Origin: Scyliorhinus canicula
Lineage: Eukaryota
Assembly (NCBI RefSeq): GCF_902713615.1
Contig: NC_052154.1
Coordinates: 92,387,030 to 92,451,029 of the forward strand
Direction: 5' to 3'
Length of the DNA: 64,000 nucleotides
Below the pieces are notes generated by a model. The model was not told where the DNA came from, searched no databases, and saw only the letters and a list, made by a program, of their open reading frames with translations. The position numbers were made by a program, and so were the translations under genes. Every line of letters begins with the position of its first letter. Position 1 is the first letter of the stretch. Below are positions 37,931-64,000 of the stretch, piece after piece.

Positions 37931-38019
37931 ACCTTGGTACCTTCCTCAGTACTGCACTACCCTCAACTTCCTGAACTCCAGCAACGCCAGCTGTTTACCA
38001 TCCCCCTGCCAAATTAGTT

Positions 38020-40589: not shown

Positions 40590-42375
40590 AGATTGACTCT
40601 TAAATGCCATCTGAAGTGGCTTAGCAAACCATGCGACTTTACAGAACCTCGACTAAAGTCATAAAGGAATAAAATTGGATGGGCCACCCGGCATCGACTT
40701 AGGCAACAGAACCAATCGTGCACACTACATCCTGTTGATACTGCAAAATCGAGCTGACTAACCTTTGGGACCTATGCCAAAATTGGCACAGCTGTCCCAC
40801 AGGTCAGTTAAGCTATAATTTGACATAGTCAGAATCATCAAATCAGCCTCTTATAGCCAGCGCTCCACGCACAATCACCACTATCCCTGTATATACCCTG
40901 CCCATTGACAGGACTGGCTCACCAGAGGTGGCAGCACAGTAGTATATAGTCAGGAGGGAGTTGTCCTAGAAGTCCTCAAAATTGGCTCATGACAGTAGGA
41001 CAAATATGAAAACCTCCTGTTGATTTCCACCCTCAGTTGATGAATCACCAGACCAGAATGTTGAACACCACTTTTAAGAGTAACCAGGGATAGTAAGGCA
41101 TAGGATGCATTCTACTTAGGGGAACGTGAATGCTCATCTCCAAGAGTGACTCAGGTACATCATTACATCATTTGGGGGCAGCAGGGTAGCATGGTGGTTA
41201 GCATAAATGCTTCACAGCTCCAGGGCCCCAGGTTCGATTCCCGGCTGGGTCACTGTCTGTGTGGAGTCTGCACATCCTCCCCCTGTGTGCGTAGGTTTCC
41301 TCCGGGTGCTGCGGTTTCCTCCCACAGTCCAAAGATGTGCGGGTTAGGTGGATTGGCCATGCTAAATTGCCCGTAGTTTCCTAATAAAAGTAAGGTTAAG
41401 GGGGGGGGGGGGGTTGTTGGGTTACGGGTGTGGGGTGGATGCGTGGGTTTGCGTAGGGTGATCATGGCTCGGCGCAACATTGAGGGCCGAAGGGCCTGTT
41501 CTGTGCTGTACTGTTCTATGTTCTATTACCAAATGAATGACCACGTCCTAAAGGACATACCTGCAGCAGGTGTTGAGCAATCCCTAAAAGGGAACTCCAA
41601 CTTCAACTTGCCCTCTTCATGTTGTAGATGTGCCTGTCTGTGACAGTATTGAGTGACCATCATATAGTCTTGTGGAGGCAAGTTCAGTCTTCACACTGAG
41701 GATGTATTCCATCATGATGTGTGGCACTGCAAACATGCACAATGCCAAATTTAGGCCAAATCTAGCAATGCAAGACTGGACATCCATGATGCACTGAGGA
41801 CATAACTGCTTTCAACCACGATCTGTAAATTCATAGAACTTTTCACTGATTGGAATCCTGCATATTGCCAAGTAAGGTGGTTGTGGTTGTTGGAGGTTAA
41901 CATCTCAGACTCAAGACATGGCTGCAGGAGTTCCTCAGGATAGCATCCAAGGCTTAAGTGGCTTCAACTGCTTCATCAATGATTTTGCTTCTGTCACGAG
42001 GTCAGACGTGCGTATGTTTGTGCATGATTACACAATGTTCAGTGCAATTCATGACTCCTCTGATACTGAAACCATCAATGTCCATACATAGAATGACCTG
42101 GACAACATTTGGGCTTAGGTTATTAAATGGCAAATACTTTGCATGCCACATAGTGTCAGATTAAACTACATACAACAAGAGAGAATCTAATCATTTCCCC
42201 TTGACATTACCATGGCACAATTCCCTTCATCAGTATCCTGGGGTTTACAACATGCCAGAAACTTAATTGGACCAGCCATATCAATACAATGGCTACAGGG
42301 AAGATCAGAGTCTGGGACTTACTTGGCGATTAACTCACTTCTTTACTTCAGAAAATCTGTCCACCATCCATAGAC
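40590..42375 (+). mobile_element. Second degraded copy of the SINE-headed CR1-group LINE
   Basis: 40600-41050 aligns by eye to the reverse complement of 34720-35220; RT remnants at 41850-42370. Confidence 0.65.
41177..41525 (+). mobile_element. HE1/V-SINE-like SINE
   Basis: Full length; near-identical to the reverse of 54428-54790. Confidence 0.9.
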
Positions 42376-43059: not shown

Positions 43060-46000
43060 TGATGCGCTATCAATTGCATTTAAAGACTCAAATCGGTACA
43101 AGAGAGGCTTTATTACAGTTAGATGTTTATCCTCCGACTGCAGCTGGTAGAATGTCAGCTCAGGAGAACGTATACATATTTATAGGGCTCCCTGTGGGCG
43201 GAGCTAGTCGGTAGGGGCTACCGGCGAACCTGTAGTACAGGTACTGCTGTACATCCCCTAATACAGGCACACACACAATTACACAGTGGTGGATCACCAC
43301 ATTCGCCCCCTGTTAAAAATGAGTCCGGCGGGGGTGACGTGGAACTATATACAGAATCCGTGAATTATTTACAGAGGGGAGGGGAAAAAAATTATGTGTC
43401 CAGCTTGTAACCCGGTTCCCGTCAGAGGTTAAATCTGTCCGGCGGTCTGATGGTTCGCTGGGAGCGACGCAACAGTGGTGGTGATGTCTGTACAGGCGGT
43501 GTCGACGGCGTCGGTGCTAGTGGTGTTGGTGCTGGCGGTGTTGGTGCTGGCCAGTTGCTGGATGACTCCGGGAGTGTGCCACAATCTTCCTTGTCCTCTA
43601 GCGTGGGCAGGGGAAGGAGGGATGGACCTGGTGGGGCTGGTGCTGGGAGCGCGGGTGGCGTATGGGTGGGGAGGTGTGTGGGAGTGGGATTCGCACCCGA
43701 AGGAGCCAGGTCCCTGAGCGAGACCGTACCCTGGCGGCCGTCGGGGAACTCCACATAGGCATACTGGGGGTTTGTGCGGAGCAGGCGAACCTTGTCCACC
43801 AAGGGGTCCGCCTTGTGGAGTCGGACTTGCCTACGCAGTAGAATCCGCCCTGGAGCTGCGAGCCAAGTCGGGTGCGACACCCCGGATGTGGGCTTCCTAG
43901 AGAAGGTAAAAACACGTTCATGGGGTGTGTTATTTGTGGCAGTGCACAGTAGAGACCGGATGGAGTGCAATGCATCCAGGAGGACCTGCTCCCAGCGAGC
44001 GGCTGGGAGGTTTCTGGACCATAGGGCCAGCTGGATGGCCCTCCAAACTGTCCCGTTCTCCCTCTCTACCTGCCCGTTTCCCCGAGGGTTGTAGCTGGTC
44101 ATCCTGCTGGAGGCGATACCCCTGCTGAGCAGGAACTGACGCAGCACATCGCTCATGAATGAGGATCCCCTGTCGCTGTGGATGTAGTCGGGGAAACCAA
44201 ACAGAGCGAATAAGGAATCAAGGGCCTTGATGACGGTGGCAGACATCATATCCGGGCATGGGATGGCGAATGGGAACCTAGAGAATTCATCGACCACACT
44301 AAGAATATACGTGTTGCGGTCGGTGGAGGGGAGGGTCCCTTTGAAATCCACACTGAGGCGTTCAAAGGGGTGGAACACTTTCACCAGTCACGCGCGGTCT
44401 GGCCGGTAGAAGTGCAGCTTGCACTCCGCACAGACCTGGCAGTCTCTGGTGACTGTCCGTACTTCCTCGACAGAGTAGGGCAGATTGCGGGCTTTGATGA
44501 GGTGGTACAACCAAGTGACCCCCGGGTGGCAAAGGCTGTTGTGCAGGGCATGGAGCTGGTCCACTTGTGCGCTGGCATATGTACCTCGGGAGAGGGTGTC
44601 TGGGGGCTCGTTGAGCTTGCCAGGGCGATACAAAATCTCATAATTGTAGGGGGAGAGCTCGATTCTCCACTGCAAGATTTTATGATTTTTGATCTTGCCC
44701 CGCTGCGTGTTGTTGAACATGAAGGTTACCGACCATTGGTCAGTGAGGAGAGTGAACCTCCTGCCGGCCAGGTAATGCCTCCAGTGCCGCACCGTTTCAA
44801 CAATTACCTGGGCCTCCTTTTCAACAGACGTATGTCGAATTTCAGAGGCATGGAGGGTGCGGGAAAAGAATGCCATGGGTCTGCCTGCCTGGTTTAGAGT
44901 GGCGGCAAGGGCGACATCTGAAGCGTCGCTCTCTACTTGAGAGGGCAGTGTCTCGTCTACTGCACGCATCCCGGCCTTGGCTGTGTCCGATCTAATACGG
45001 GTGAAGGCATGTTGTGCCTCGGCCATGAGGGGAAATTGAATGGACTGTATCAGTGGGCGGGCTTTGTCCGAGTATTGTGGGACCCACTGGGCATAGTAGG
45101 AGAAGAACCTCAGGCAGCGTTTGAGGGCCTTGGGGCAGTGGGGAATTGGGAGCTCCATAAGGGGGCGTGGCATGTGGTCGGGATCGGGCCCCAGGAGTCA
45201 GTTTTGAACTATGTAGCCGAGGATGGCTAAGCGGTTAGTGCTGAACACACACTTCTCCTTGTTGTAAGTGAGGTTGAGGAGAGATGCGGTGTGGAGAAAT
45301 TTGGCACGGTTGTCGTTGTGGTCCTTCTGGCTCAAGGCCGCAGATGGTGACATTATCTAAGTACGGAAATGTGGTCCGCAGTCCGTACCGGTCAACCATT
45401 CGGTACATTTCTCTTTGGAATACCGAGACCCCATTAGTGACGCCGAAGGGAACCCTAAGAAATTGATAGAGGCGACCGTCCGCATCGAAGGCAGTGTATG
45501 GACGGTCCGATTTGCGGATGGGGAGCTGGTGGTAGGCAGATTTAAGGTCAATCGTTGAGAAGACCCGGTACTGTGCAATCTGATTGACCATATCAGATAT
45601 GCGAGGGAGGGGGTACGCATCAAGCTGCGTGTACCGATTGATGGTCTGGCTGTAGTCCACAACCATCCTGTGTTTCTCCCCAGTTTTAACCACCACCACT
45701 TGGGCTCTCCAGGGACTGTTGCTGGCCTCGATAATACCCTCCCGAAGCAGCCGCTGGACTTCGGACCTGATGAAGGTCCTGTCCTGGGTGCTGTACCGTC
45801 TGCTCCTGATGGCGACGGGCTTGCAACCTGCAGTCAGATTGGCAAAGAGGGAGGGAGGGTCAACCTTGAGGGTTGTGAGGCCGCAAACGGTGAGTGGGGG
45901 TAGGGGCCCGCCAAATTTGAGGGTGAGACTCTGGAGGTTACATTGGAAATCCAGGCCCAGTAATAGTGTTGCACAGAGATTGGGGAGAATGTACAGGCAG

Positions 46001-47622
46001 AAACCGCTGAATTCAATGCCTTGTATGGTGAGGTTGACCACACAGAAACCCCGGATCGGGACAGAGTGGGATCCAGAAGCCAGGGAGATCCGCTGATGGT
46101 GGGATGGACCACAAGGGAGCAGCGCCTTACCATGTCCGGGTGGATGAAGCTATCGGTGCTCCCGGAGTCCAGTACGCAGAAGGTCGCGTGGCCATTGATT
46201 AGCACCGTCGTCAAAGCGGTAGCCAGGTTTTGAGGACGGGACTGGTCCAGCATCATGGAGGCGAGCAGCGGGCGATCGTCCGAGGAGTCCGATGAGGAGA
46301 GGCAGCGGTCCGGGTCCAGCGGTCCAGTCCCGAGGGGAAGATAAAATGGCGGTGTCCGAGGGACCTGTGGGGGAGAAAATGGCAGCGCCCATGCAGTGCA
46401 TGATGCGGGGGCGGGGCAAGATGGAGGCGCCCATGGTGCGCACAATGTGGGGGTGGGGCAAGATGGTGGCGCCCACTGGCCACACGTGGACCTGGGGGAG
46501 ACGATGGCGGCACCCACTGGTCGCACGTGGCCCCAGGAGCAGAGGATGGCAGTGCCCATTTTACGATCAGCTGAGGGAAGGGAGAGAAGTCGGGCGTGAT
46601 AGCGGTAACCGAGTGGGCCTGGCGCACCGCCGCAAAGTGGCCCTTCTTACCGCAGGATTTACAGGTGGCGGCGTGGGCTGGGCAGCACTGGCGGAGGTGC
46701 ATCTGATGGCTGCAGAAGTAGCAGCGGGGACCCCCAGAGTGCGCAGTGTGGCGAGCAGCGCAGGCAAATTGTGCGGGAGCGGCCCCAGTCGAGGGGGTCA
46801 GTTGCGGGGTCCATGAGGGGTAGGATGGGTGAGCCGCGCGGCGAGAAGCAACCATCATGGAGAGCGCTAAAGTTTTTGTCGCCGTTAGGTCGAGCGTGGC
46901 CCCTTCCAGCAGTCATTGCTGGATGGGGTCCGATGCAATCCACGTCACGAATGCATCATGCATGAAGAGATTGGAATGTTCCGTGACTGTGACGGCCTGA
47001 CAGTCACAGTCCCGTTCGAGAGGGATTAGGGCCCACCAGAAGTCTTCAATCGACTCACCAGGTAGTTGTACGCGAGTGGCGAGTACGGCCTTGCAAATAG
47101 AGTGTTCATCTTCTGGACGTAGTTTTCTTGAAGGAGTTCCATGGCACCTGCGTAATTTAGCGCATCCTGTATCAATGGGAACACGCTGGAGCTCAACCTT
47201 GAGTAGAGAAGTTGGATTTTCTGAGCTCCTGTCGGCTCGGGATTTGCTGAGTTGATATAGGCCTCGAAGCAAGCCAGCCAGTGATTAAAGTCTTTTCTGG
47301 TGTTTGGCGATTGCGGATCCAGCTGCAAGCAATCTGGTTTGATCCTGATGTCCATGATGCGGAAAATCTAACTGTAATAAATTGATGCGCTATCGAGCAC
47401 TTAAAGACTCGAATTGGTACAAGAGAGGCTTTATTACAGTTAGATGTTTATCCTCCGACTGCAGCTGGTAGAATGGCAGTTCAGGAGAACTCATACATAT
47501 TTATAGGGCTCCCTGTGGGCGGAGCTAGCCGGCAGGGGCTACCGGCAAATCTGTAGTACAGGTACTGCTGTACATCCCCTAATACAGGCACACAAACAAT
47601 TACACAGTGGTGGATCACCACA
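43060..47622 (-). mobile_element. Full-length Gypsy/Ty3 LTR retrotransposon (4563 bp), frameshifted
   Basis: LTRs 47383-47622 and 43060-43301 have TG...CA ends and differ by ~13 substitutions plus a 2-nt indel. Imperfect 5-bp TSD GCATC/GCATG; PPT just inside the 3' LTR. Domain order gag, CCHC, PR (LDSGS), RT (YPLP, PFG, YLDN), RH, IN (HHCC, DDE). Confidence 0.95.
43422..47355 (-). pseudogene. gag-pol of the Gypsy element, broken across several frames
   Basis: ORF pieces 47026-47355 and 46913-47272 (gag), 46253-46858 (zinc knuckle), 45834-46559 (PR), 45235-46041 (RT), 44388-45173 (RH + HHCC), 43422-44384 (IN core). Confidence 0.9.
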
Positions 47623-48469
47623 GCATGCAAGAAAGGAAAATCTGTAATTTGGGGGATTTCGCACACTAATGTTCTCTGCCAAACATTCTTCCCTCCGTAC
47701 ATCGACCATGTATTAATAAATGCAGCAAGGAACCTGCAGCCGCTTTCTCCTACTGCACACGTGTCCGTGCTTATTTTTCTACAAACCTTATTCGTCGCAA
47801 GTAGTGATTATTTGCCTGTGTCCCGGCTGATTGAAGCTGCAAGTCATTAAAATCTGCAGCTAGTGTCAACCGCTCTTATGCCAAACTGAACAACAGAGGC
47901 GTTTCATTTGGGTGAAGCATGTGAATGGTCCGTATTGCTGAGGCTATTGATAGTGGAAGCACGAACGTTATCGAACAGTATTTATTGTCTACCTGGTTAC
48001 TTTTAGCAATTATCAAATCTACAAGTGACGTAAAGAAACAACATGAACACCCAGGTATTGTCCTCCGCCTGGTTTACGTTGGGTACGGAGCAGTCTCCCA
48101 GGCCACAGCCGGTGATGTAGAGATTATCAATGAAATGATGGGTCACTGAGCTTGGAATCTTCAGAATTGTCCACATTGGGGTTCGAAACATTAATCCGTC
48201 TCATCATGGGGAAATTGTACGCACATGCCACTTTTCATCCCAGCTTTCCTCAGGGCAAGAGTTCCTGAGGCGAGTTCGGCATGGTTGAATTTAAACTCTT
48301 AAATTGTTCTCCATGGCCTCGTGTGGCAAATGGACAACTGTTTTGTTAAATCTCACCAAAGAGAAAGGAAAGGCATGTTCGCGGCTCAAAGACAGGATGT
48401 TGCGCCTTCATGGTGACATTTTAGGACCTCCGCCTTCTGACAGCAATCAGTCTGATCAAGTGGTTCAGG

Positions 48470-48524
48470 ATGTTGGTCAGTGTTAGAATTCAGTGCATTG
48501 CTGTTCTGGCGATCATTTTCACAG
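48470..48524 (+). CDS. Exon 1: signal peptide [18 protein letters not shown](G)
   Basis: Hydrophobic leader; phase-1 donor g|gtacct; 158-bp intron. Confidence 0.8.
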
Positions 48525-51500
48525 GTACCTGCTCCTATTATACACTATTTTCTCATTGAACCGTGTAGTTACGTTACCTTTTCTTGATACATGTGGCATT
48601 ATCTTTACAGATGTTTCCTGACCCGCTCGCCCTCGGTCTTTCCCTCCAATACTACCATATAATTATTCAATTTTCCCCATAGGCCCGGGTGGAACTTCAG
48701 TCAAAGTCAGTCAACTCCCTGATAGGACGACCTCAATCACCGGTACAAACGTTTCCTTTCATTGCTCGCTTCCCTTATTTCAACGCGGCCCACGTGTGAA
48801 TGTAAACTGGTGGAAAAAGGGCGATGATAACTATCTAAGATCGAGACAAAATGACAGGATGATAACTGGCTTCAAAACTAAATTCAGCGGCTTCCTTCAG
48901 ATAATCAATGTCACTGTGCAGGACTCAGGAGTGTACTATTGCACTGTCACCCATGAAGGCAAAACAGCTGGAAATGGAACCGGGTCTCATTTAGAAGTAT
49001 GGGGTACGTATCAGAAAAAGGTGAACGAGATTCCTGTAACTGTGATATTCCATAATTCGAAACATTTCAACGTTGTGCTTTGAAAGATTCCAATTGTAAA
49101 TTCAGTTTCACGATTAATATATAGACATGCAAATTCCACTGATGATTGTTACATGCTGATGCATGTTACGATATTTGACAAATATTGATCAAGACGAACA
49201 TTATCCGTTAACTGATCTCAACGTGTACTCAACAGGCTATTGAAGTAAAAAATCCCATATTGATTACAGTCCAATTTCCACAGTAATGGACAGTAGCGCA
49301 TATCTGAGAAAGATAACGCGCAACTCTTGTCCTATGTCATGGTTTGATTTTCCTACGTTGCTTACGGACGACCGAGCGCTTCTAATAGGATCAGATAGTC
49401 CATATTTATAAGTTAGTGGTCTATATCTTAAGCGTATATTTGTAATAGTTGAAGTTCACAACGTGTCATTTTGAACCTACCCCTCCACATATTTTCCCTA
49501 TCACTGACTTCTTGTAAATATGAGATCATCCAGGATCGTGGGGACGAACTCTCCCTGACTTGCTTAAGTATACTTTCCAATCCGTTTTCAGATTCAACTG
49601 GATGGCATTGGCGCGCAGCGGAACAACCATTCAGAATAGAACATTTGGCGAGATTTTAACCGCGTGGGCCATCGCTTTCATCTGCGTGCTTTTCTTTTGC
49701 CTGTTGATTATAGTTTAAATTATGACCGAAATAGTAGCAACACAAGTGAGCATGTCACTTAGGATGTAACTACTCATAATACAATATATATATTTATCCT
49801 CCCACCACCCTACTCCAGTATGCGACCAGCAATGGGTTGGAACACAACATTTATCTGGTAACCTAGCTTCACGGTATTAGCTGTGGCTGGGCTAGCATCA
49901 CACTCCTCCTCCTCTGAGGCACACGGATCTTGGTTCAAATCCCACTCCAGGAGTTGAGCATGAATATCAAGGCCGACATTCCTGTGCAATACCCCAGGAG
50001 TCCAACATTGTCGGAGGTGCCGTTCTTCGGATGAGAATTTAGGCTGAAGCCCACTCTGCCGTCCGGGTTGATGTGTAAATCCCATAACACAATTCTGAAG
50101 AAGGGAAGGGAAATGATTCCCGGTATCCAGGTCAATATTGCTCCCTCAATCAATATCACAAAAACGGATGATCTGGCCATGGTCACATTGCTGTTCACAG
50201 ATTGGCTGCCAAATGTTCAGTATTACAACAGTAACTCCAATTCCAATGTTCTGCATTGGCTGTGAAGCCCGTTGAGATGTCCGGTAGTGGTGAACAGTGT
50301 TATATAACCACCAGTATTTCTATTCTTTGTTGTTCTAGTTCCACCAACTCCACTGAAAATTAACTCTCAGCCAACTGAAAAGGATTCATCTGCACGTCTG
50401 ACTGTTCTGTGTGCCACAGCTCATTTTTCCCTGGAGAATATCAGCTTCACTTGGTATAAGGATGGCATCAAAACTGCAGCAGGGATAAATACCATCATTA
50501 AACCCAACGCCAATGGACTATATGAAGCTTCTAGCCGGTTGCAAGAGACGCAACCTGCCCACACCCCAACTGTTTATACCTGCCTTGTCTCTCACAGTAC
50601 GCTGCAAATTCCAGCTATAGCCACTCATGTTGTCACCTCTCCCAACACAGGTAAGACGTTCGATATCATGATGGAAGTGTACAGGATTGGAAATGGTTAT
50701 TTAGCTCAGCCTTCCTGTGCAGCCTCTTTGTTTCAGCTGTCAAATACATTTTCCCCAAAGTAACATTTCCTACACAACACAGAAATCAGTCTCCTTAACC
50801 CTCATATCCGATTATCTTTGAAAATTCCAATACTGTATATGTCATTCAAAACAAGCTTTCAGATAATAAAAGAGTTATGCAGACTCAAAACGTTAACTCT
50901 GTTTTTCATCAGAGATGCTACCAGAGCTCCAGAAATGGCAGCTCACCGTCCTGTTCTCATGTCCGCATGTCCATCCTTGGCCTGTTGCAATTTTCCAGTG
51001 AAGCCCCATGCAAACTTACAATTAGGTACGTTACAGCCTTTCGGACTTAACATTGAGTTCAACAACATCACACTTTGAACTCTCTACTCCAGCGTGGCCA
51101 CACTTTTTTTCTATCAATGTATTTTTATTTTCATTCCTTCCATTGATCTGTTTTTCCCTCACCACTGACCCCCCACTACCACTCAACTTGGCCAACTGTT
51201 CCCAGTTGCTCTTTAACACACTGCTCAACTTTGTTCTGCCATTCACACATTTTAATATCTTTATGTGCCACTATCAGCACCCTTCTTAGCCTTAATCATC
51301 CCCATTGATATTCCTTTTGTCTTCTGTCCTTGACATCTTTGTCTATCTCCATCTATCGCTGCCCCCTAACCAGCCCCACCACTCCACAACCCCCCCCCCC
51401 CCCCCCCCACCGCCACTACATTCTAAATCTGATACCATTTCCAACTGTCTCTAGCTTTGACACAGAGTCATCCAGACGTGAAGCATTCGTTCCCTTTTCT

Positions 51501-54500
51501 CTCCACAGGTGCTGTTAGGCCTCTTGGGATTGCCCAGTATTTTCTGTTTTTCATGGAGTGCCATAGGGATTAGTGCTGGGGCCTCAGCTATTTACAAATT
51601 AATTCAATTACTTGGATCAATGGACCGAACATACAGTCGCTGAATTTGCTAATTTCACAAAGGTAGATCAGAGTAAGTCGTAAAGAGGATAAAAGATGCC
51701 TGCAGATGGATATAGGCAGATTAAATGTGTGTGAAAAAACATGGCAGATGGAAATAATGGGAGAAAACGTGAACTTGTCCCCTTTGGCAGGAAGGACAGT
51801 AAAGCAGAAATTATTTAAAGGGTGAGAGATTACAGAACACTGCAGTACAGAGGGATCTGGGTGCCCTGGTACATGAATCACAAAAGTTTAATATGCAGGC
51901 ACAGCAAATGATTAGGAAGACAGATTGAATGCTGTAACTCGTTGCAAGGGGAGTGCAACATAAAAGAATATGGGCTGGATTCACTGATCACCGACGCCAA
52001 AATCGTGTTCAGCGATCGGCCGGAAAATCCCCTTTGAGGCGGCATCATTATTGCGATGCTCCGCCCCCTCAAAAATGGTATACTCATGTGGACGGCCTCA
52101 GGAAGGCACCTGAGGCACCACCCCCCCCAATTCTCCGCCCCCGGTGGGCGTGTTCCCGATAGTGGAGGACACATGTGCTCACAGTTACTTGAGACCTCGT
52201 TTGGCAGCTGCGGACTGAGTCCAGCGCAGCCACTGTCGGGGAGTGTGGGGGGGGGGGGGGGACCTGTTATCCTGCCAGGGGGGGATTCAGCGCGGGTGGG
52301 GGGACTGGTTCACAGGTGGTCCAGGGGAGACAAGGCTGGTTACAGGGGGATGGTTTTTGACAGGCCGGGTCCGTGCGCAGGCCACGACTGTGAGCATGTG
52401 CGGTCATGGACCCAGGAGCTTTATGCTGCTAGCTCCCCACTGGACGGAGGATCGGTGCAGGGTGGTGCTGACTTTATGGCCTTAAGACCAGACAGATCCT
52501 GCGGACATAGTCACAGGATCAGAGAATCCAGCCCTATATGTTTTGTTTAGGTTGTACAGGGCGTTGGTGGGACCACATCTGGAGAACTGTGTACAGTTAT
52601 GGTCTCCTTATTTATGCAATAACCCCCATCTGTAATTCTGGGAATTCAGAAGGAGACCAATTTGAATCATCCATTCGGCACTTCAGGAAAAACATTGTTT
52701 CAAATGCTGGAGCTTTATCTTTTGCACTTAAAATCTAGTTTCCCCACACAATTAAGGATACATAGATACATAAAAGATAGGAGCAGGAGGAGGCCTTTTG
52801 GCCCTTTGAGCCTGCTCCATCATTCATCACGATCATGGCTGGTCATCCAACTCAATAGCCTAATCCTGCATTCTCTCCATAGCCTTTGATCCCATTCTCC
52901 CCAAGTGCTATATCCAGCCGCCTCGTGAATATATTCAAAGTTTTAGCATCAACTACAAAGAACATAGAACAAAGAACAAAGAAAATTACAGCACAGGAAC
53001 ATGCCCTTCGGCCCTCCCAGCCTGCGCCGATCCAGATCCTTTATCTAAACCTGTTGCCTATTTTCCAAGGATCTACTTCCCTCTAATCCCCGCCCGTTCA
53101 TATATCTGTCCAGATGCATCTTAAATGATGCTATCGTGCCCGCCTCTACCACCTCCGCTGGCAACTACTTCCTGTGGTAATGAATTCCACAGGATGGGGA
53201 AATGTGTTCAGACTCTTCCTCTGTTCAGTCATTTAATTGCCCTCCACCATTCACAATGATTGTGGGAGGGTTACAAAACTTAAGTGTGATCTATTTGTTA
53301 TGAATCAGTTAGCTAAGTGAATCAAATGCTGCTTTCAACATTTGGGATGTGAGTGGAACCGTGTTATAGTTTCTCCATGTTTTCACCTCATTTGTACATA
53401 TGCCTGGTGCAGCTCCTGGCATACCCTGCTGCAATCTTCATTGAGATTTCATCGCGTAGTTTGACAGTACTACCAAGAACAAAGAACAAAGAACAAAGAA
53501 AATTACAGCACAAGAACAGGCCCATCGGCCCTCCCAGCCTGCACTGATCCAGATCCTTTATCTAAACCTGTTGCCTATTTTCCAAGGTCTACTTCCCTCT
53601 GTTCCCCACCCGTTCATATATCTGCCCAGATGCATCTTAAATGATGCTATCATACCCGCCTCTACCACCTCCACTGGCAAAGCATTCCAGGCACCCACCA
53701 CCCTCTGCGTTAAAAACTTTCCACACCCATCTCCCTTAAACTTTTCCACTCTCACCTTGAAATCGTGACCCCTTGTAATTGACATCCCCACTCTTGGAAA
53801 AAGCTTGTTGCTATCCACCTTGTCCATACCTCTCATAATTTTGTAGACCTCAATCAGGTCTCCACTCAACCTCCGTATTTCCAATGAAAACAATCTTAAT
53901 CAACTCAACCTTTCTTCATAGCTAGCACCCTCCATACCAGGCAACATCCTGGTGAACCTACTCTGCACCCTCTCTAAAGCATCCACATCCTTCTGGTAAT
54001 GTGGCGACCAGAGCTGCACGCAGTATTCCAAATGTGGTCTAACCAAAGTCCGATACAACTGTAACATGACCTGCCGACTCTTGTACTCAATACCCCATCT
54101 GATGAAGGCAAGCATGCTGTATGCCTTCTTGACCACTCTATCGACCTGCATTGCCACCATCAGGGGACAATGGACCTGAACTCCCAGATCTCTCTGTACA
54201 TCAATTTTCCCCAGGACTCTTCCATTGATCATATAGTCTGCTCTTGAGTTAGATCTTCCAAAATGGATCACCTCGCATTTGCCTGGATTGAACTCCATCT
54301 GCCATTTCTCTGCCCAACTCTCCAATCTATCTATATTTTGCTGTATTCTCTGACAGTCTGCCTCGCTATCTGCAACTCCACCAATCTTAGTATCATCTGC
54401 AAACTTGCTCATCAGACCACTTATACATAGATAGAACATTACATAGAACAGTACAGCACAGAACAGGCCCTTCGGCCCTCAATGTTGTGCCAAGCCACGA

Positions 54501-57500
54501 TCACCCTACTCAAACCCACATATCCACCCTATACCCGTAACCCAACACCCCCCCCCCCCCCCCCCTTAACCTTACTTTTATTAGGACACTACGGGCAATT
54601 TAGCATGGCCAATCCACCTAACCTGCACATCTTTGGACTGTGGGAGGAAACCGGAGCACCCGGAGGAAACCCACGCACACAGCGGGAGGACGTGCAGACT
54701 CCACACAGACAGTGACCCAGCCGGGAATCGAACCTGGGACCCTGGAGCTGTGAAGCATTTATGCTAACCACCATGCTACCCTGCTGCCCCTAAGCTTCGT
54801 CCAGATCATTTATGTATATCACAAACAACAGTGGTCTGAGCACGGATCCCTGTGGAACACCACTAGTCACCTTTCTCCATTTTTAGACACTCCCTTCCAC
54901 CACTACTCTTTGTCTCCTGTTGCCCAGCCAGTTCTTTATTCATCTAGCTCGTACACCCTGAACCCCATACGGCTTCACTTTTTCCATCAACCTGCCATGG
55001 GAAACTTTATCAAATGCTTTACTGAAGTCCATGTATATGACATCTACAGCCCTTCCCTCATCAATTAACTTTGTCACTTCCTCAGAGAATTCTATTAGGT
55101 TTGTAAGACATGACCTTCCCTGCACAAAAGCATGCTGCCTATGACTGATAAGTCAATTTTCTTCCAAATGTGAATAGATCCTATCCCTCAGTATCTTCTC
55201 CAACAGTTTGCCTACCACTGACGTCAAGCTAACAGGTCTATAATTCCCTGGATTATCCCTGCTACCCTTCTTAAACAAAGGGACAACATTAGCAATTCTC
55301 CAGTCCTCTGGGACCTCACCCGTGCTCAAGGATGCTGCAAATATATCTGTTGAGGCCCCAGCTATTTCGTTCCTCGCTTCCCTCAGTAACCTGGGATAGA
55401 TCCTATCCGGTCCTGGGGACTTGTCCACCTTAATGTCTTTTAGAATATCCAAAACCTCCCCCTTCCTTATGCCCACATGACCTAGAGTATTTAAACATCC
55501 ATCCCTAGCCTCAATATCCATCATGTCCCTCTCCTTGGTGAATACCAGAGTGGAGATATGTCCATCCTGGCTGTTGGAGATTGTGGTTGAATCTGACTGT
55601 TTGTGTTAATGACACATATGCTTTATGGATGCCGTGTCATGAGGGTTTTTTAAAATTCATTCGTGGGATGCCGCTGTCAGTGACAAGGTCAGCATTTATT
55701 ACCCTTGCAGTCCCTGTGATATCGGTACACTCACAGTGCTGTAAGGGAAGGGGGTTCCAGGACTTTGACCCAGTGACAGTGAATGAAGGACAATATACTT
55801 CCACATCAGGCTGGTGAGTGGCTTGGAGAACTTTTAGGTGTTCCTAGCTCTGGTGAAAATCAATCTCATCCAGCACGATGGTGGTGCCTGACAATAATGT
55901 GAAGTCAGGACTGTGTCTCCACAAGGACTGTGCAGTGATCTGTACCAATATTGTATTTTACAGATGCATCTTTGTCAGGTGGAATTGCGAGGACAAGGTA
56001 ATTCATGATATTTTCCGCTAATGAATGTCATGACCGCAGGCTGCTGACTCAGCCCAGCCTGCTATGTCCTTTAGGCATTCACTAGGATTCCTAGATTACT
56101 AGTTCAGTAATATCATGTGAAAGGTACGAACAAGGTGGTCGCGGAAATAATGCTCCCATTTGTGGGTCAGTCCGGCACATGGGGAACTGCTTTAAAATAA
56201 GACGTTGCCCTTTTAGTGCAGAGGTAAGGATTTTTTTTGTCTCAGAGGGTTGTACGACTTCGGAACTCGCTGTCTCAGAAGGCGATGGAGGCGGGTTCAT
56301 TAAATATTTTCAAAGTGGAGGGAGATAGACTATTGTTAGACAAGGGAATCAAAGTTTATCAGGTAGTTGGGAATGTCGAATTCATAATAATCTTTATTTT
56401 TGTCACAGGTAGGCAATTAAGTCACTGTGAAAAGCCCCTAGTTGCCACACTCCAGCGCCTGTTCATGTGCATTGAGGGAGAATTAAGAATGTCCAATTTA
56501 TCTAACAGCACTTCTTTTGGGACTTGTGGGAGGAAACTGGAGCACCCGGAGGAAACCCACGCAGACACAGGGAGAACACGCAGAACAAACAGTGACCTAA
56601 GCCAGGAATTAAACCTGATACCCTGACGCTGTGAAACAACAGTGATAACAACTGTACCGCCCAATTTGAAACACAAGCAAATCAGCCTTGATCATACCGA
56701 ATGGCGATGCAACCTCGAGGGGATGAATGGCCTACTACTGCTCCTATGCCTTGCCTTCACACCATTACACTGCATTAATACAAATGATTGGACTGTTTGA
56801 ATATTTCCAGTGCTGCAGGGTTTGGCCCTATTTTATTGAATGAACTGTGTACGGTTTTTCATTTAAATATTTTATTTTATTCTTGCAGATGGTCACATCG
56901 CACGTTTCTTACTGATTTATGCAACTGCAGGAGGCGGATTTGTATCTCTGGTGCTGGGTCTCATTATTGTGAAGTGTTGCGTGACAAACAAAAGAAACAG
57001 TATGAAAGACTTTTTCCTTCTCGCTAAAATAAGCACAGCCCTTAACAAGAGTGGGAGAGCGAGCAAACAAAATCATGTTACATGTAAAGAGGGAGTTCGT
57101 TGATTGCAACTGAACAGTTCAAACAATCGCCTATATCACAGGAACAGAGATAATTGGGAATATTTCCTGAGATTTAGAATGTCAGATTTACTCCTGTAAA
57201 CTTCATTTACACATATTTCAACAATGATTTAGTGAATATGTTTTTTAAATCATTATCGATGTAACATTGATTTGATCAAGGTGTGACCTGATAGAAATCT
57301 ACAAGATTATGAGAGGCATGGATGGAGTGGATGGGCAGGCACTCTTTCCCAGGGTGGAGGGGTCAGTCACTATGGGGCATAGTTTTAAGGTCTGTGGGGC
57401 AAAGTTTAGAGGAGACGTGCAAGGCAGGCTTTTTACAGAGAGGGTGGTGAGTGCCCGGAAGGCGTTGCCAGGGGAGGTTGGCAAAGCAGATATATTAACG

Positions 57501-60500
57501 GCATTCAAAAGTCATCTTGACATGGATAAGATGGGTATAGAGGGATATGGCACTAGGAAATGCTGAGGGTTTTGGCCAACGGTGGCATCATGACCGGTAT
57601 AGGCTTGGAGAGCCGAAGGGCCTTTTCCTGTGCTGTATTGTTCTTTGTTCTTTGAATTTTTAATTTGGGTATAATTTTCCACGACCCTCCACCACCCCTG
57701 CAGCCAAACGTTCAATGTGTGCTTTATTGTAAAATCTCCTATCATTGCCTGCAAACTTACCCTTATAGGCCACTGAGTGTAAAAGTGTTTATTCTGCCCA
57801 TGCAATTTAAGAAGCACCCTCTCACTGCCAGGCCTGCAACAGAGCAATAAGGCTCAGATTGTGAAAAACTGATTGGAAATCACACAATTCCAAACGTGAT
57901 CTGGAGTTAATTTTATGCTTTACACTGAATCTACTAGAAATGTCCTTCTGAGCTCTGTAAATGTTCATTCTAAAGTCGTGAACTTCATTAATTTCCAGGT
58001 GTGCAGAGAGATGGTGAAAGATCCGATTATTCCGGACATCAGGTATGTTTCCACAATCGATTCTAATGCACTTCAAATGTAAATATAAATATACGCACAG
58101 CAATGATTTAACCTATTTAAATAGGGCAGCATGGTAGTACAGTGGTTAGTACTGTTGTTTCACAGCTCCAGGGTCCCAGGTTCGATTCCTGGCTTGGGTC
58201 ACTGTCTGTGCAGAGTCTGCACATTCTCCCCATGTCTGCGTGGGTTTCCTCTGGGTGCTCCGGTTTCCTCCCACTGTCCAAAGATGTGCAGGTTAGGTGG
58301 ATTGGCCATGATAAATTGCCCTTAATGCCCAAACAGATTGGGTGGGTTGCTGGGTTATGGGGCTACAGGGATAGGGTGGAGTTGTGGGCTTAAATGGCAT
58401 TCTCTTTCCAAGTGCCGGTGCAGACTCGATGGGCCAAATGGCTTCCTTCTGCACTGTAAATTCTATGTAAATTGCTATGTTTTATTCTTGCGTTCAAAAT
58501 TCAGAAGAAATGAAACAGTGTGAATTCTGCAGTTGATCTGTAGAAGCGGTCATTGTCAATAGATCAAAGGCACCTGATTTATAACTCTATCTGGCTGTGA
58601 AGAAGCATGTTGCATAAAACTTAACATCCATTGAATAGTAATGGGGAAACCTACTTCTCCCTCCTGTGCACAGTGGGCAATGTGATGACGGCTGTACCAT
58701 ACCCATTCAGCAATTTTAAACCAGAGCGCACAATTTCAAATCCTACCACGATATTTTGATACTTAAGTTCAGTTTCAAAAAATTTATCTGATCAAAATAA
58801 GGTAGATATGCAAAAATACCCGTGAATTTGTCATGTTTCTGCAAAAGCACAACTGGTTAATTAATGTCTGACAGCACGTCTACCTTCTTGAAATTATGTG
58901 TTCTTGACTCAAGTCCATAATGCCTGGTCTAACTCTTAAATTAATTCTGAAATTTCCTGACATGCCCATCACCGCTTTCTCAGGGCATTGACTGTTAGAA
59001 CTGATTGTTGGCCTTGTCAGGAAGGTCACAGCGTGAGAGAGTACAAGATCCTGCAGGATATCACAAGCTGAAGATACCAGATTTGCTGTTGAATGTTTCT
59101 GTGGGTGCTCAGGCAATGGAAGTGGAACTTTGGATCAAGTTGCTGCAGTGCGAATAACCACAAGGAGACAGGTGCCGAGAAATTTGTATTAATTCCCATT
59201 GCCTTATTCTCCAATCAGGTATTCCAAATGAATTTGGAACAATCCCACCCAACCCAAGTAAGAGTATTATCTAATTGGTTATTGGGATGTTTGGATGTAC
59301 AAAGGGATCTGGGTGTCCTTGAACACCAGTCAATGAAAGTGATGAGGCAGATGTAGCAAGTAATTTTGAAAGCAAATGGTATTTTGTTCTTCATTGCAAG
59401 AGGATTTTAGTTCCGAAGACGGGAACTCTTACTACAGTCATATAGGGCCTCGGTGAGTCCACACCTGGAGTACTGCGTGAAATTTTGGTCTCCCTTCCTA
59501 AGAAATGATACACTTGCCATAGGGCGAGTGCAGAGGAGGTTCACTAGGCTGAGTCCGGGGTTGACGGAACTGTTCTAAGAAGAGACATGGGTTCGACTGG
59601 CCCTATAATGATCAGAGCTTGGATGGATGAGAGGACATCTGTTTGAAACCTGTAAATTTCTAACAGTGCTGGACAGACTAGATGCTGGGAGAATTATTTC
59701 CCTGGTGGCACTCTAGAACTCGGAGACACAGTCTCAGGATATAGGGTAGACCATTTAGGACTCAGATGAGGGAAATTCGGTAGAATTCTCTACTACAGAA
59801 GGTTAAGGAGGCCAAGTAAACAAATGTACTCAAGTAATAGAAATTTAGATTTCAATGGCACCAAGGGGCATAGGAAGGAAGTGGGGATATGACAGTGAGA
59901 CAGAGAATCAGCCATGTTCGTATTGAATGGTGGAGCACTCTCTACGGGCAGAATGGTGCACTCCTTTTCCTAGTTTCTCTGTTTCTATGTGTTTGCCTTG
60001 AACACAATTGGATGGGGTGGGATCGTGGTATGGGATTTGTTGCCACACAGGCCATGAGGCCAACCAGGCACCATAAAGCTTGTTGGAACACAGTGCCATG
60101 GACCCTGGTTTGGGTCACTGTCTGTGTGGAGTCTACACATTCTCCCCGTCTCTGCGTGGGTTTCCACCAGGTGCTCCAATTTCCTCCTACAAGTCCCAAA
60201 AGATATGCTTGAAATGAAAATGAAATGGCATGTTAGGCGAATTGGACATTCTTAATTCTCCTGAACAGCTGCCGGAGTGTGGTGGCAACGGGATTTTCAC
60301 AGTAATTTCATTCCATTTCAAAGTAAAAATAATAATCTTTATGAGTGTCGTAAGCCTACTTGTGACACTAATAAACATTATTATTATTATTACTTTGCCG
60401 CTATTTTCCATTTATTGACTTCAATTGACAGAAATATGTTGCCATTTACTCAAACATTTGCAATACACTGGCTTTTTCATCAACTTTCTGGTCAGGGCAG

Positions 60501-63136
60501 AGAGTAACATCCTTGAATATCACCCCGTCAACAGCTGAATTCAGTAAGATCTGTTTTCTGTGATAAATGTTCACATTTACTTTCCATTTGTATCTGTGTT
60601 TCTAATTCTTCCCAGTGCTCATCAGAGTGTACCTTAGTGCAAGAGCCATGGAAGTAGATATTACTGAGAAATATTGATATATTGCCGGCGACCAGAGTTC
60701 AACTCCGGTCTTGGATGCCTGTCTGTGTGGAGATTGCCCCGTGCATTCTCCCCATGTCTGTGTTGGATTCCACCGAGTGCTCCGGTTTCTCCCCAGCGTC
60801 CAAAGATGTTCAGGTTAGGTGGTTTGGCCATGCTAAAAAAAATGGCCTTAAGATGTGCAGGTTAAATGAGGTTATGCGAATGGTGTCAGGGAGAGGGCCG
60901 AGGTAGAGGACTCTTTTGGAGGGTTGGTGCAAACTCGATGGGCCAAATCGTAATCTTCTGCACTATATGGATTCCATGGAATATAACAATTCCTGTTTCA
61001 TTGCACAACACAGTTAAAAATATATATAATTTGATACACATTATACATGTAGACGTGGATATTGCGACATTATGGATGAATAGAAATATGGTGGTGCGTG
61101 TAGTATGGCATTTCGCGGTCATGTTGTAATGTAAACTCGTTTGCTCCATGATTGCGGATTACTCTTTGCGGGTTGTCTGAACATCAGAACTGATCTGATT
61201 ACCAGCCACGCTCCTCTCTGGGTTAATTCAATTCCTTCCAGTCTATAATTGCTGCAGAAATTTTCCAATCATGCCTCGCGTTCAATTTCATAAAACCATC
61301 TCAATGGCATCCCTACTTTTGCTGTAGCATCCGTATGAATTCAACCAGCGACTCCCATTAATGGCATGCAAGGATCAAGCGTGATCCCGCATTCTCTATT
61401 TTGGGAATTTCTCGGGATTTCATTAACTTCGACTGAATATTCGCAGCAATCCCAGACAACCAAATGGAAGAGCATCTTCAGCTCTTTACACCGGTTCTCC
61501 TAGAATTCTGGTAGCCACGCAGTCATGTATGATCAGGAGAGCGGTTGTCGCTCTGAAACGGTGAACGCAGATTTCCGCTTTTCCCGCCCGCTTGTTCATG
61601 AAGCAATGTTTGGGCGGAGCATCCAAATGGAAATCCGGTGGGTGAGATACACCTACCCAGGAACTTTCTTCGGGTTGATTTCAGTGCTAGGAAAATAGGC
61701 CAGATGTGGTTTCCATCAGTGCCTCCTCCAGATTTTCCATTCCTCGCTCTCCGCTGACGATGCCTTAAACCCAGGCGGTAAACTCTTTCGTCACTACCCC
61801 AGAAACCCGACTCAGTCCGTTCGCTGGGCGCTGGTGACGCAGAGATGGGAGTCAGGCGAGATTCAACGAATAATAGTCACTGGCACCCATTCATTTAATT
61901 CTGGATGCTGGAGCTACAGTTTAGGGATCTGCTTGCATTGTTGCTTGAAGCATCCGGTCGAGATTATTCGTCCCAACGACATGACAAGAGATGTTTTTCT
62001 TTGTCTTTCCGTCCGTTCAGGGGGATATCCAAACGTTGGCGCCTTATGCCGGACGAGATGCGACTGACTCCCAGAAGGCCGCAATACGTAAAGAAAGGAC
62101 AGCATATATGCAGGTAGGCTTAAAGAGTCGATCAAAAGATGCTGAATAACAGTCATTAACAAATATAACGGTGTATTGAGAAACATCTCTTTAATACTGC
62201 TTTGGTACTTTGGTCGGCTTTAAAACTAATCGGAATGGCAACTACAGCTCTGTTTGTCCTCGGGGTCGCTACGTGAGAATTGAGAACAATGTATACACTG
62301 ACACTCTAGTGCAATCGTAAGGGTCGTCTGCATTGTCTAAAGTGCCGGCTTTCAGGTGATAAGTTTTCACAGCATCCCTACAGTGCAGAGAGAGGCCATT
62401 TGGTCCATCGAGTCTGCACCCACCCTCTGAAACAACACCCTACCTAGACCCACTCCGCTACCTGCACGTTTTTAAACACTGAGGGGCAATTTTAGCATGG
62501 CCAATCCATGTAACCTGCACACATTTGGACCCAGAAGAAATCTACGCAGACACGCAGAAAAAGTGAAAACTCATCACTGATAGTGACCAAGGCGAAATTG
62601 AACCAGGGTCACTGTGCACCTGTGCCGCCCTGAGACCATATTTACCTGGTAAAGTGGATCTAATGCCACTTATTTGGGAGATGACCAAGGCTTATCTTCT
62701 GTGGCCTGATCAGTGACTTGGTCGTTATCACTGAAACAAAACATTACCACCATCTTGCTGTTAGTGGAATTTTACTGTGAACATTTCCGCTGTCAGGCTT
62801 GCCCCAGTGACTAGCTGCACCACAACAAGTACTTCATTGATTGTAAAACACGTCACGAGGTCGTGACATGCAAGGTTTTGTTTTTCCATTTCAATGACTG
62901 AGTTTAACTTTAGAGTATAAACAAGTAAAATATGAAACTAATTATATTCCCAAACATTGATTTCACAGACCAAACCAAGACGACCTGACAATGCGCTGAC
63001 CTACGCTGCTCTAGATATGTCAGGGTCAAAGAAATCAGCAAATCCTAATTATAAGCATACAAGCACGGAGTATGCTCAGCTAAGGATTGAAAAACAAAGA
63101 GCAGATGTTATCCACACGGAACCGAAAGCGACGTGA
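48470..63136 (+). CDS. Ig-superfamily receptor, leader-V(J-joined)-C1-TM-ITIM/ITSM, 336 aa predicted; CDS join(48470-48524,48683-49003,50339-50650,56889-56999,57999-58042,62969-63136)
   Basis: All five introns are GT-AG with phases 1,1,1,1,0. The joined CDS is 1011 nt and open from ATG to TGA, and the domains fall in the order expected of a type I receptor. Confidence 0.85.
48683..49003 (+). CDS. Exon 2: V-set domain with integral J-like G strand
   Basis: [10 protein letters not shown]...NVSFHCS...VNWWKK...[37 protein letters not shown]; acceptor ccccatag, donor g|gtacgt. Confidence 0.92.
49860..50320 (+). mobile_element. DeuSINE (SacSINE1/AmnSINE1-like), diverged
   Basis: tRNA-like ggttcaaatccc followed by tgtcggaggtgccgttcttcggatgag...gtcacattgctgtt...attggctgtgaagc, matching the recalled Deu domain. 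Confidence 0.75.
50339..50650 (+). CDS. Exon 3: C1-set Ig domain
   Basis: VPPTP...[23 protein letters not shown]...[10 protein letters not shown]...[10 protein letters not shown], with the C1 hallmarks C, F-x3-I-x3-W and YxCxVxH; phase 1/1, donor g|gtaaga. Confidence 0.92.
51560..52615 (+). mobile_element. Degraded CR1 RT fragment interrupted by a MITE
   Basis: LGPQLFT- and PHLE-like remnants on both sides of 51972-52534. Confidence 0.6.
51972..52534. mobile_element. Harbinger/PIF-like MITE (563 bp)
   Basis: 18-bp TIRs GGGCTGGATTC(A/T)CTGATC with one mismatch; 3-bp TSD TAT. Confidence 0.85.
52760..53175 (-). mobile_element. Nested CR1 3' ends
   Basis: Two 3' UTR types, (ATAC)n- and (AAGAACA)n-tailed, one inside the other. 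Confidence 0.75.
53470..55545 (-). mobile_element. CR1 LINE RT + 3' UTR with inserted SINE
   Basis: [26 protein letters not shown] and [10 protein letters not shown] motifs. Confidence 0.9.
54428..54790 (-). mobile_element. HE1/V-SINE-like SINE
   Basis: Full length, reverse orientation. Confidence 0.9.
56385..56662 (-). mobile_element. SINE with HE1-type head and (ATT)n-type tail, inserted in a CR1 3' fragment
   Basis: Head and core at 56515-56662, tail at 56385-56510. Confidence 0.75.
56889..56999 (+). CDS. Exon 4: transmembrane segment (D)[36 protein letters not shown]
   Basis: Strong acceptor attttattttattcttgcag; ~22 hydrophobic residues then a basic stop-transfer; phase-1 donor a|gtatga. 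Confidence 0.85.
57275..57655 (+). mobile_element. CR1 LINE 3' end
   Basis: [10 protein letters not shown]...FTERVV peptide and ctttgttcttt tail. Confidence 0.8.
57999..58042 (+). CDS. Exon 5: short cytoplasmic exon (S)[14 protein letters not shown]
   Basis: Acceptor ttaatttccag and donor cag|gtatgt; converts phase 1 to phase 0 as needed to join exons 4 and 6. Confidence 0.7.
58122..58480 (+). mobile_element. HE1/V-SINE-like SINE, full length
   Basis: Head, core and tail. Confidence 0.9.
59270..59985 (+). mobile_element. Degraded CR1 RT C-terminus/3' UTR
   Basis: ccacacctggagtactgc (PHLEYC) and 3' UTR similarity. Confidence 0.7.
60680..60980 (+). mobile_element. Diverged HE1/V-SINE-like SINE
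   Basis: Core and tail recognisable. Confidence 0.65.
62360..62630 (-). mobile_element. Diverged HE1/V-SINE-like SINE
   Basis: Reverse head, core and tail with deletions. Confidence 0.65.
62969..63136 (+). CDS. Exon 6: terminal cytoplasmic exon [55 protein letters not shown]
   Basis: Acceptor tgatttcacag, phase 0. ITIM LTYAAL (62996-63013), ITSM-like TEYAQL (63065-63082), TGA at 63134-63136. Confidence 0.85.
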   Translation, partial: TKPRRPDNALTYAALDMSGSKKSANPNYKHTSTEYAQLRIEKQRADVIHTEPKAT

Positions 63137-63454
63137 TAATGGGGTCCAGTGCGGAACGCGCGTTTTATTTATGTTCATTGTTAATGGCCGAACTGCTGCA
63201 TAACATCGAAAATGACAAACTAATAACCAGTGTTCTGGGGTTGGGTGGTTTAATAATAGGCCACCGCTAACCACAAACATAGATTTAGAAGCTGTCGCTA
63301 TCCTTCACTTGATTTAAGATGCTGTAATGAAATGGATTGTAAAATCACAAGATCTGATCAAACAGGCGATCACCAGGCATCTATCTGATTGGTGTTTGCA
63401 TTTGTATTTGTTACTTGTTGTTTAAGCTTTCTGAAGTTTTTGAAGCTGGCTTTT

Positions 63455-63600
63455 AAAGCAGACCAAGGCAGGCCAGCTGCACGGTTCAATTCCCGCACCA
63501 GCCTCCCCGAACAGGCGCCGGAATGTGGCGACTAGGAGCTTTTCACAGTAACTTCATTCGAAGCCTACTTGTGACAATAAGCGATTTTCATTTCATTTCA
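63455..63600 (+). mobile_element. Short SINE with (CATTT)n tail
   Basis: cacggttcaattccc...ggaatgtggcgactagg...ttcacagtaacttcatt...ttcatttcatttca. Confidence 0.8.
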
Positions 63601-63654
63601 AATTTTCACTTCACCTTGGCCAGGGGTTGGATTTAGTGCTGTTTTTTAATTTGT

Positions 63655-63982
63655 CCTTGGGATGTGGGCATCACTGGCTGGGCCAGCATTTGATGCCCAA
63701 ACCTAATTGACCTTGAACTCAGTTGTTTGCTAGGTCATTTCAGTGTGTGTGTAGTGTCCAGGTGAGGTCGGCAGAATTCCTTCCCTGACCGACATTAGTG
63801 AACCAGATGGGTTTTTACAACAATCAGCAATGGTTTCATGGTCATCATTCGACTTCTATTTTCATATTTTTATTGAATTCCAGTATCACCATCTACCGTG
63901 CCGGGATTCGAACCCGACACCACAGGCCATTACCCTGGGTCTCTGGATTGCTCGTTCAGTGACAATACCACTGAGCCACCGT
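63655..63982 (-). mobile_element. tRNA-derived SINE (family of 7470-7863)
   Basis: Reverse A box ggtggctcagtggt and B box ggttcgaatccc; tail shared with the LINE at 32071. Confidence 0.75.
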
Positions 63983-64000
63983 ATTCTCATAAAACATCCT

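Follow-up and report, generated by a model that had tools for sequence, protein, structure and literature searches.

Analysis of a 64,000-nt stretch of the catshark Scyliorhinus canicula genome (contig NC_052154.1, positions 92,387,030 to 92,451,029; the whole stretch is hereafter called the window) revealed a gene for a type I receptor, in which a V-set and a C1-set immunoglobulin (Ig) domain are followed by a transmembrane (TM) segment and by a cytoplasmic tail. The tail carries an immunoreceptor tyrosine-based inhibitory motif (ITIM) and a second motif resembling the immunoreceptor tyrosine-based switch motif (ITSM). The gene structure, the domain types, the tail motifs and the membership in a multigene family of cartilaginous fishes are firm. 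The complete reading, i.e. that the gene is intact and that the nearest well-studied relatives of its family are the signal-regulatory proteins (SIRPs), is considered likely.

Six exons of the plus strand, rebuilt from the raw sequence and joined, give an open frame of 1011 nt, which encodes 336 amino acids and ends with a TGA stop codon. The intron phases are 1,1,1,1,0; a GT is found at each donor and a pyrimidine tract followed by AG at each acceptor. An earlier note on this DNA, made from the letters alone, had proposed a six-exon GT-AG model of this length with consistent phases, and the model was reproduced exactly. The exons are the following, with an additional candidate, indicated as 5b, which the note had overlooked:

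48470-48524, plus strand: exon 1, 18 codons and 1 nt, from the start codon through the greater part of the signal peptide
48683-49003, plus strand: exon 2, end of the leader and V-set domain with a J-like G strand, in a single exon; phase 1 to 1
50339-50650, plus strand: exon 3, C1-set domain, with VPPTPLKI at its start and YTCLVSH within; phase 1 to 1
56889-56999, plus strand: exon 4, short stalk, TM helix, KCC and basic stop-transfer residues; phase 1 to 1
57999-58042, plus strand: exon 5, 44-nt cytoplasmic exon; phase 1 to 0
62021-62113, plus strand: candidate exon 5b, 93 nt, 31 amino acids; phase 0 to 0
62969-63136, plus strand: exon 6, last coding exon, with LTYAAL (Y293), TEYAQL (Y316) and the TGA stop

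Exon 1 ends in phase 1 at a CAG/gtacct donor, and the resulting layout is that of a split leader; its product is identical to the N-terminus of two NCBI models of the locus, P0001 and P0151, and is matched by residues 1-18 of the Heterodontus protein P0163 in a tblastn search. Exon 3 ends at a CAG/gtaaga donor. The TM helix encoded by exon 4 is uncharged and the stalk is free of cysteines. Exon 5 was chosen among ten open 44-nt AG..GT candidates because of its homology to the relatives, and it has the best splice sites among them; by eye, its product lines up with GVKNDGERSSSPEQQ of P0163 and with GMQKDGERCHYPEQQ of P0004.

When related proteins are searched against the window by tblastn, they match all the exons in order. 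P0161 hits exon 2 with an E-value of 2e-47, and exon 4 is hit by P0004 (2e-9) as well as by P0163 and P0164 (about 6e-6). For P0163 the E-values are 1.5e-36 for the V exon, 1.6e-40 for the C1 exon, 6e-6 for the TM exon and 1.7e-22 for the tail exon, the latter with 77% identity. This Heterodontus orthologue of 335 amino acids is colinear with residues 1-336 of the model, at 64% identity in one blastp alignment which includes exon 5. Downstream of the coding region no AATAAA or ATTAAA was present after the stop codon up to the window end (63101-64000), and the 3' untranslated region probably extends beyond the window.

Four relatives (P0164, P0004, P0008 and P0161) contain an extra cytoplasmic segment between the exon 5 product and that of the last exon. 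This segment maps to 62012-62140 of the window, with tblastn E-values between 4e-4 and 2e-3 and 39-44% identity. Candidate exon 5b is located here; it is preceded by a long pyrimidine tract with a cag/GGG acceptor and followed by a CAG/gtaggc donor, and its inclusion leads to a model of 1104 nt and 367 amino acids. Judging from these sequence features, 62021-62113 is probably a seventh exon of the gene. Its tyrosine motifs are decayed (APYAGR and TAYMQ); in more distant members of the family a clear ITIM is found in this segment, together with an "RTVYAQ" motif. P0163 represents a predicted form without the exon 5b segment in another shark.

Domain searches assign exon 2 to the V-set (Pfam, E 1.4e-9) and exon 3 to the C1-set (PF07654), the latter with 36.7 bits against a cut-off of 21 and an E-value of 5.6e-9. 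The runner-up models for exon 3, Ig_2 and Ig_3, reach 21.6 and 19.6 bits, respectively, and this lead of the C1-set score rules out a C2-set or I-set assignment. The ten best named atlas matches of the exon are all C1-set domains. An AlphaFold2 model of the ectodomain, obtained with a family alignment of 40 sequences as input, displays two beta-sandwich domains with a predicted local distance difference test score (pLDDT) of 88.1 and a predicted template modelling score (pTM) of 0.78; DSSP assigns strands A, B, C, a short C', D, E, F and G to the second domain. Thus Pfam, the atlas neighbours and the D strand in the model agree with the C1-set identity proposed in the earlier note.

The V and J-like parts are contiguous within exon 2. 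A search for recombination signal sequences (RSS) in or beside the V exon found none in 48400-50400, where no heptamer is paired with a nonamer across a 12- or 23-bp spacer; a lone CACTGTG occurs at 48912, without a nonamer. A rearranging gene is ruled out by the lack of RSS in this interval, and the description as a germline-joined, non-rearranging V(J-like)-C1-TM receptor holds. A second C1 exon and paralogous exons were likewise ruled out in the window by tblastn with the C1 exon and with the relatives, and no other Ig-type exon was found elsewhere in the 64 kb.

In the last exon both expected tail motifs are found, the ITIM LTYAAL with Y293 and the ITSM-like TEYAQL with Y316, at a spacing of 23 residues. 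The counterpart of the exon by alignment is the C-terminal pair of ITIMs in SIRP-alpha from turtles, birds and crocodiles (DN-LTYA-LDM ... S/TEYA); the comparison of the tail with these sauropsid proteins gives z values of 6.4-8.2, and none of 2000 shuffles reached the observed score. Moreover, tailed turtle SIRP-alpha-like proteins and the shark relative P0174 share a precomputed Pfam assignment, PF27946.

On the analogy of SIRP-alpha and of other ITIM receptors, a mechanism can be proposed. Binding of a ligand by the V domain would bring the tail close to Src-family kinases, which would phosphorylate Y293 and Y316; the two phosphotyrosines, spaced as in SIRP-alpha, might then be bound by the tandem SH2 domains of SHP-1 or SHP-2, and activation would be damped in the cell bearing the receptor, presumably a leukocyte. 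The TM segment being uncharged, an association with a charged adaptor is not evident.

The gene belongs to a large family. When the C1 exon was used as query in an exhaustive HMMER search, 263 proteins were retrieved at E<=0.001, 96 of them at E<=1e-10, and a V-C1 multigene family of about 100 clusters at 50% identity was delineated. All the single-C1 members whose source was looked up come from sharks, rays or chimaeras; the nearest matches outside of chondrichthyans include SIRP-like proteins from lungfish, coelacanth and turtle. Hallmarks of the family are the V-C1-TM architecture, a J-like GNGTGSxLxV stretch, the opening of the C1 domain with VPPTPLKI and the YTCLVSH motif. About half of the relatives inspected have long tails with LTYAAL-type ITIM and TEYAQL-type motifs, and others end in a short tail of 5-40 residues; at least two short-tailed members, P0065 and P0013, have an arginine in or beside the hydrophobic segment. 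By analogy, this mixture of long and short tails recalls paired inhibitory and activating receptors.

The automatic names of the members are inconsistent: SIRP-alpha-like or SIRP-beta-like in many cases, and also Ig lambda-like, tapasin-related-like, CD276, NCR3LG1-like and major histocompatibility complex (MHC) class II beta-like. Most listed members of a given species lie on one chromosome-sized record. In the catshark, the paralogues P0005 and P0065 are on the same 198.79-Mb record, LR744038.1, as the gene described here; in a passage of PMC10751288 the catshark MHC chromosome is given as NC_052158.1. The gene is not a singular relic: it has many chondrichthyan paralogues, and within this large family it is a SIRP-like member with an automatic annotation rather than a new kind of gene. 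Among the papers listed by searches of the accessible literature that combined SIRP with shark terms, none dealt with a chondrichthyan V-C1 SIRP-like family, which is not proof that none exists.

Some observations on single members can be added. The locus of P0005 shares only repeats with the window and displays the same order of V, C1, TM and tail exons. P0005 itself (221 amino acids, at about 92.04-92.06 Mb of LR744038.1) is annotated as 'HLA class II histocompatibility antigen, DO beta chain-like'; upstream of this model, at L001:7713-8018 of its locus, lies an unannotated V exon with 52% identity to the V exon of this gene, and the public model is truncated and misnamed. The skate protein P0002 (Amblyraja radiata, 493 amino acids) contains two near-identical tandem C1 domains; most relatives have one. 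The pair looks like a recent exon duplication, giving a SIRP-like V-C1-C1 layout.

Part of the catshark gene is already present in public databases. P0001, the top match of the C1 exon with 100% identity, is NCBI XP_038663089.1 (isoform X3 of Scyliorhinus canicula), and P0151, which falls in the same cluster, is XP_038663088.1 (isoform X2); NCBI names the locus SIRP-alpha-like. Hence the V-C1 part was already annotated, and the addition consists of the TM and tail exons. The term 'hidden', which the earlier note had applied to the whole gene, is appropriate for these exons, which are absent from both public models, and not for the V-C1 part. The two isoforms have the following C-terminal ends, each identified by a tail with 100% identity:

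50651-50763, plus strand: C-terminus of X2 (266 amino acids, no TM), read-through into the intron; tail of P0151
56505-56597, plus strand: last coding exon of X3 (259 amino acids, no TM), within an interspersed repeat; tail of P0001

The X3 tail sequence also matches 11 other sites of the window on both strands, with 56-72% identity, and as judged from its sequence the last exon of X3 is an exonised repeat. The interspersed repeat at 56505-56597 has at least 12 copies in the window, on both strands; the others are at 60119-60208, 12179-12265, 7341-7412, 9446-9541, 58197-58283, 31797-31877, 54631-54711, 29086-29166, 41254-41325, 36415-36492 and 39499-39579.

Several observations weigh against an intact inhibitory receptor related to the SIRPs. 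In the gene model, the donor of exon 4 (ACA/gtatga) is the weakest splice site. Among the products, both X2 and X3 end after the C1 domain and lack TM and tail, and a tail-directed search of 5.8 billion proteins returned no catshark protein with this tail. As for the kinship, SIRPs have two C1 domains and this gene has one; a sister relation between the family and the SIRPs is not resolved by the phylogenetic tree of C1 domains; and Ig light chains match the ectodomain profile of the family as well as SIRP-alpha does. Finally, CD33-type Siglecs, which are inhibitory receptors, carry a similar ITIM together with a TEYSEV motif; since such ITIM plus ITSM-like tails are shared by Siglecs, the match with the SIRP-alpha tail could be convergent, and taken alone this resemblance is no proof of common descent.

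The points on the gene product raise the question whether the products of the gene are mainly or exclusively soluble V-C1 proteins such as X2 and X3, which would act in a decoy-like or opsonin-like manner after secretion, the TM and tail exons being no longer used. This would account for the fact that the sole public products found for the locus terminate by read-through or in a repeat-derived exon, and for the outcome of the tail-directed search; a search with the whole protein did not return a catshark product with TM and tail either. The 6.2-kb intron 3, which separates the C1 exon from the TM exon, also contains minus-strand reverse-transcriptase-like open reading frames (ORFs). However, exons 4, 5, 5b and 6 are all open, with canonical splice sites and correct phases; the ITIM and the ITSM-like motif are kept, and exons 4-6 are 52-77% identical to Heterodontus. 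Read-through and exonised-repeat ends are, in turn, typical by-products of unspliced or mis-spliced RNA.

A product longer than X2 and X3 probably exists: since P0001 is absent from a gene index that keeps the longest product of each gene, a longer isoform (X1) is to be expected. Words sampled from the window were also looked up in a run, named X1 as well and marked 'RNA?'. The run contains 0.23 of the sampled words of 48470-50700, a stretch of which exons make up 0.31, and 0.52 of those of 62969-64000; the second value, which covers the last coding exon, speaks against the soluble-only explanation. These shares are weak evidence, compatible with expression, and splicing is not thereby demonstrated. 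Taken together, an exclusively or mainly soluble product appears improbable, and a membrane receptor, in whose transcripts the TM and tail exons are predicted to be used, is preferred.

The relationship of the family to SIRPs and to antigen receptors was approached by phylogeny, profile comparison and fold searches. V-C1 SIRPs have been argued to be related to the antigen-receptor precursor (Hatherley et al. 2009, PMC2785349), and precursors of VJC1 type are discussed, with PRARP cited, by Verissimo et al. 2023 (PMC10751288); UrIg and UrIg2 are non-rearranging VJ-C1 genes of elasmobranchs (Flajnik, Ohta and colleagues, PMC12227049). The C1 tree comprised 76 domains and 103 columns and was read from its midpoint; T-cell receptor (TCR), MHC, tapasin and PRARP domains were outside its scope. 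It included P0132, a lungfish SIRP-gamma-like protein, and its UrIg-like (P0098) and UrIg2-like (P0006, P0009 and P0010) labels were inferred from architecture and not from names. In this tree the C1 domains of the shark family form one clade (100/99), which stands in a polytomy with the second (d2) and third (d3) domains of SIRPs and with Ig heavy chain (IgH) domains. The UrIg-like, UrIg2-like and Ig light chain (IgL)-like C1 domains fall across the midpoint from the family, with weak support (34/84).

When the ectodomain profile of the family was compared with PDB, V-C regions of Ig lambda and Ig kappa scored 77.3 and 72.5 bits; SIRP-alpha scored 70.3 bits over d1-d2, in a colinear manner, plus 48.6 bits for d3, and the V-C1 region of UrIg2 61.7 bits. 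Among the C1 domains scored separately in the displayed alignments, SIRP-alpha d3 leads, all the others being at or below 37.3 bits. With the C1 exon as query, the best PDB sequence match is UrIg2 (9dmx), when its three domains are summed. The top matches of the fold search in PDB, a database dominated by antibodies, are Ig lambda chains. In the fold search of Swiss-Prot, rat SIRP-alpha comes first (E 3.8e-14, template modelling score 0.63, 23% identity), and mouse, bovine and human SIRP-alpha as well as SIRP-beta1 are among the top 16; PD-L1, B7H6, CD276, tapasin-related protein and butyrophilins come next.

These data bear on a further alternative, in which the family is not related to SIRPs and, like UrIg, UrIg2 or PRARP, descends independently from a non-rearranging precursor of antigen receptors, its tail having been gained by convergence or exon shuffling. 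The single-exon VJ, the split leader and the one C1 domain are indeed arranged as in Ig light chains or TCR chains, and Ig lambda and kappa chains lead both the profile scores and the PDB folds; the summed UrIg2 match and the inconsistent family names point in the same direction. Conversely, the UrIg-like, UrIg2-like and IgL-like C1 domains are separated from the family in the tree, albeit weakly; of the C1 domains scored separately in the PDB alignments shown, d3 of SIRP-alpha matches best; SIRP-alpha tops the search among reviewed folds, with the highest identities; and the dominance of antibodies in PDB biases the fold ranking. On balance, an origin independent of SIRPs is regarded as improbable, and the SIRPs are retained as the likely nearest well-studied relatives.

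In the light of these comparisons two statements of the earlier note need to be modified. The novelty of the gene is reduced by its SIRP-alpha-like name, fold and tail, all of which align it with SIRP-alpha, although the C1 tree does not indicate one-to-one orthology with SIRPA. The assignment to a SIRP-like, pre-RAG class of V-C1 receptors stands insofar as a non-rearranging V-C1 receptor is concerned; a special link to the pre-RAG receptor does not emerge from the C1 tree, which leaves the family in a polytomy with SIRP and IgH domains and, weakly, apart from those of UrIg, UrIg2 and IgL type.

Elsewhere in the window there are traces of mobile elements and a zinc-finger ORF. An intact ORF at 596-1627 (plus strand) encodes 343 amino acids, nearly all of them C2H2 zinc fingers (zf-H2C2_2, E 1.5e-79); it is the only zinc-finger ORF of at least 150 amino acids in the window and corresponds to the ZNF neighbour mentioned in the earlier note. 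Retroelement remains occupy 36633-38810 and 43422-46041, and include an ORF of the endonuclease of a long interspersed nuclear element (LINE) on the minus strand beside a reverse transcriptase ORF on the plus strand, as well as Gypsy-like integrase, RNase H and reverse transcriptase ORFs on the minus strand. In intron 3, the translations of the long minus-strand ORFs at 53558-55524 resemble reverse transcriptase fragments, and this region is 91% identical to a part of the P0005 locus (L001).

With the TM and signalling exons added, and probably the seventh exon as well, the locus is predicted to encode a membrane-bound inhibitory receptor and no longer a soluble protein. The main value of these findings lies in this correction of the annotation and in pointing to a family that deserves systematic description. 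Such a description would help to date the SIRP lineage and would show how prevalent non-rearranging V-C1 receptors were at the base of jawed vertebrates; the question of the origin of antigen receptors is not answered by a single gene alone.

Among known systems, the SIRP family, found in tetrapods and lobe-finned fishes, shares with this gene a V-set domain with a J-like strand, a C1-set domain and a single TM segment. The tail of SIRP-alpha also contains ITIM-type tyrosine pairs of similar sequence and spacing, and the coexistence of long-tailed and short-tailed members, as in SIRP-alpha versus SIRP-beta, is a feature of the shark family as well. However, SIRP-alpha has two pairs of tyrosine motifs, whereas this gene has one ITIM/ITSM pair plus the decayed pair of exon 5b, and the identity with the SIRP-alpha ectodomain is only 21-25%.

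UrIg and UrIg2 resemble the gene in having a germline-joined VJ exon, a split leader and a C1-type domain, and in being genes of cartilaginous fishes. Differently from this gene with its single C1 domain, UrIg is a secreted protein with three C1 domains, and nurse shark UrIg2 has nine C1 domains and a TM segment (PMC12227049). No ITIM was found in the text of PMC12227049 for either of them, whereas this gene has an ITIM tail, and in the C1 tree the domains labelled UrIg-like and UrIg2-like lie apart from this family, with the weak support reported above.

Ig light chains and TCR chains share the two-domain V-C1 ectodomain, but the catshark gene has neither RSS nor separate V and J segments, and it lacks an interchain stalk cysteine. 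Moreover, Ig and TCR chains associate with signalling partners, in place of which this gene has an ITIM tail. The PRARP genes of chicken and other non-mammals, described by Fu et al. in 2019, reportedly combine a non-rearranging VJ with one C domain, a TM segment and an ITIM tail.

Finally, teleost NITRs and mammalian KIR/LILR are lineage-restricted multigene families that include ITIM-bearing members and short-tailed, putatively activating ones. It is conceivable, although doubtful at present, that the chondrichthyan family is an undescribed paired inhibitory and activating system, a counterpart of NITRs or of SIRP/KIR, that its V-C1 form is close to the ancestor of SIRPs and antigen-receptor chains, and that the isoform with TM and ITIM is functional in the catshark. 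The first domain of NITRs is of VJ type, and the second domain of NITRs and of KIR/LILR is of I-type or C2-type; in the catshark gene, by contrast, the second domain is a C1-set domain.

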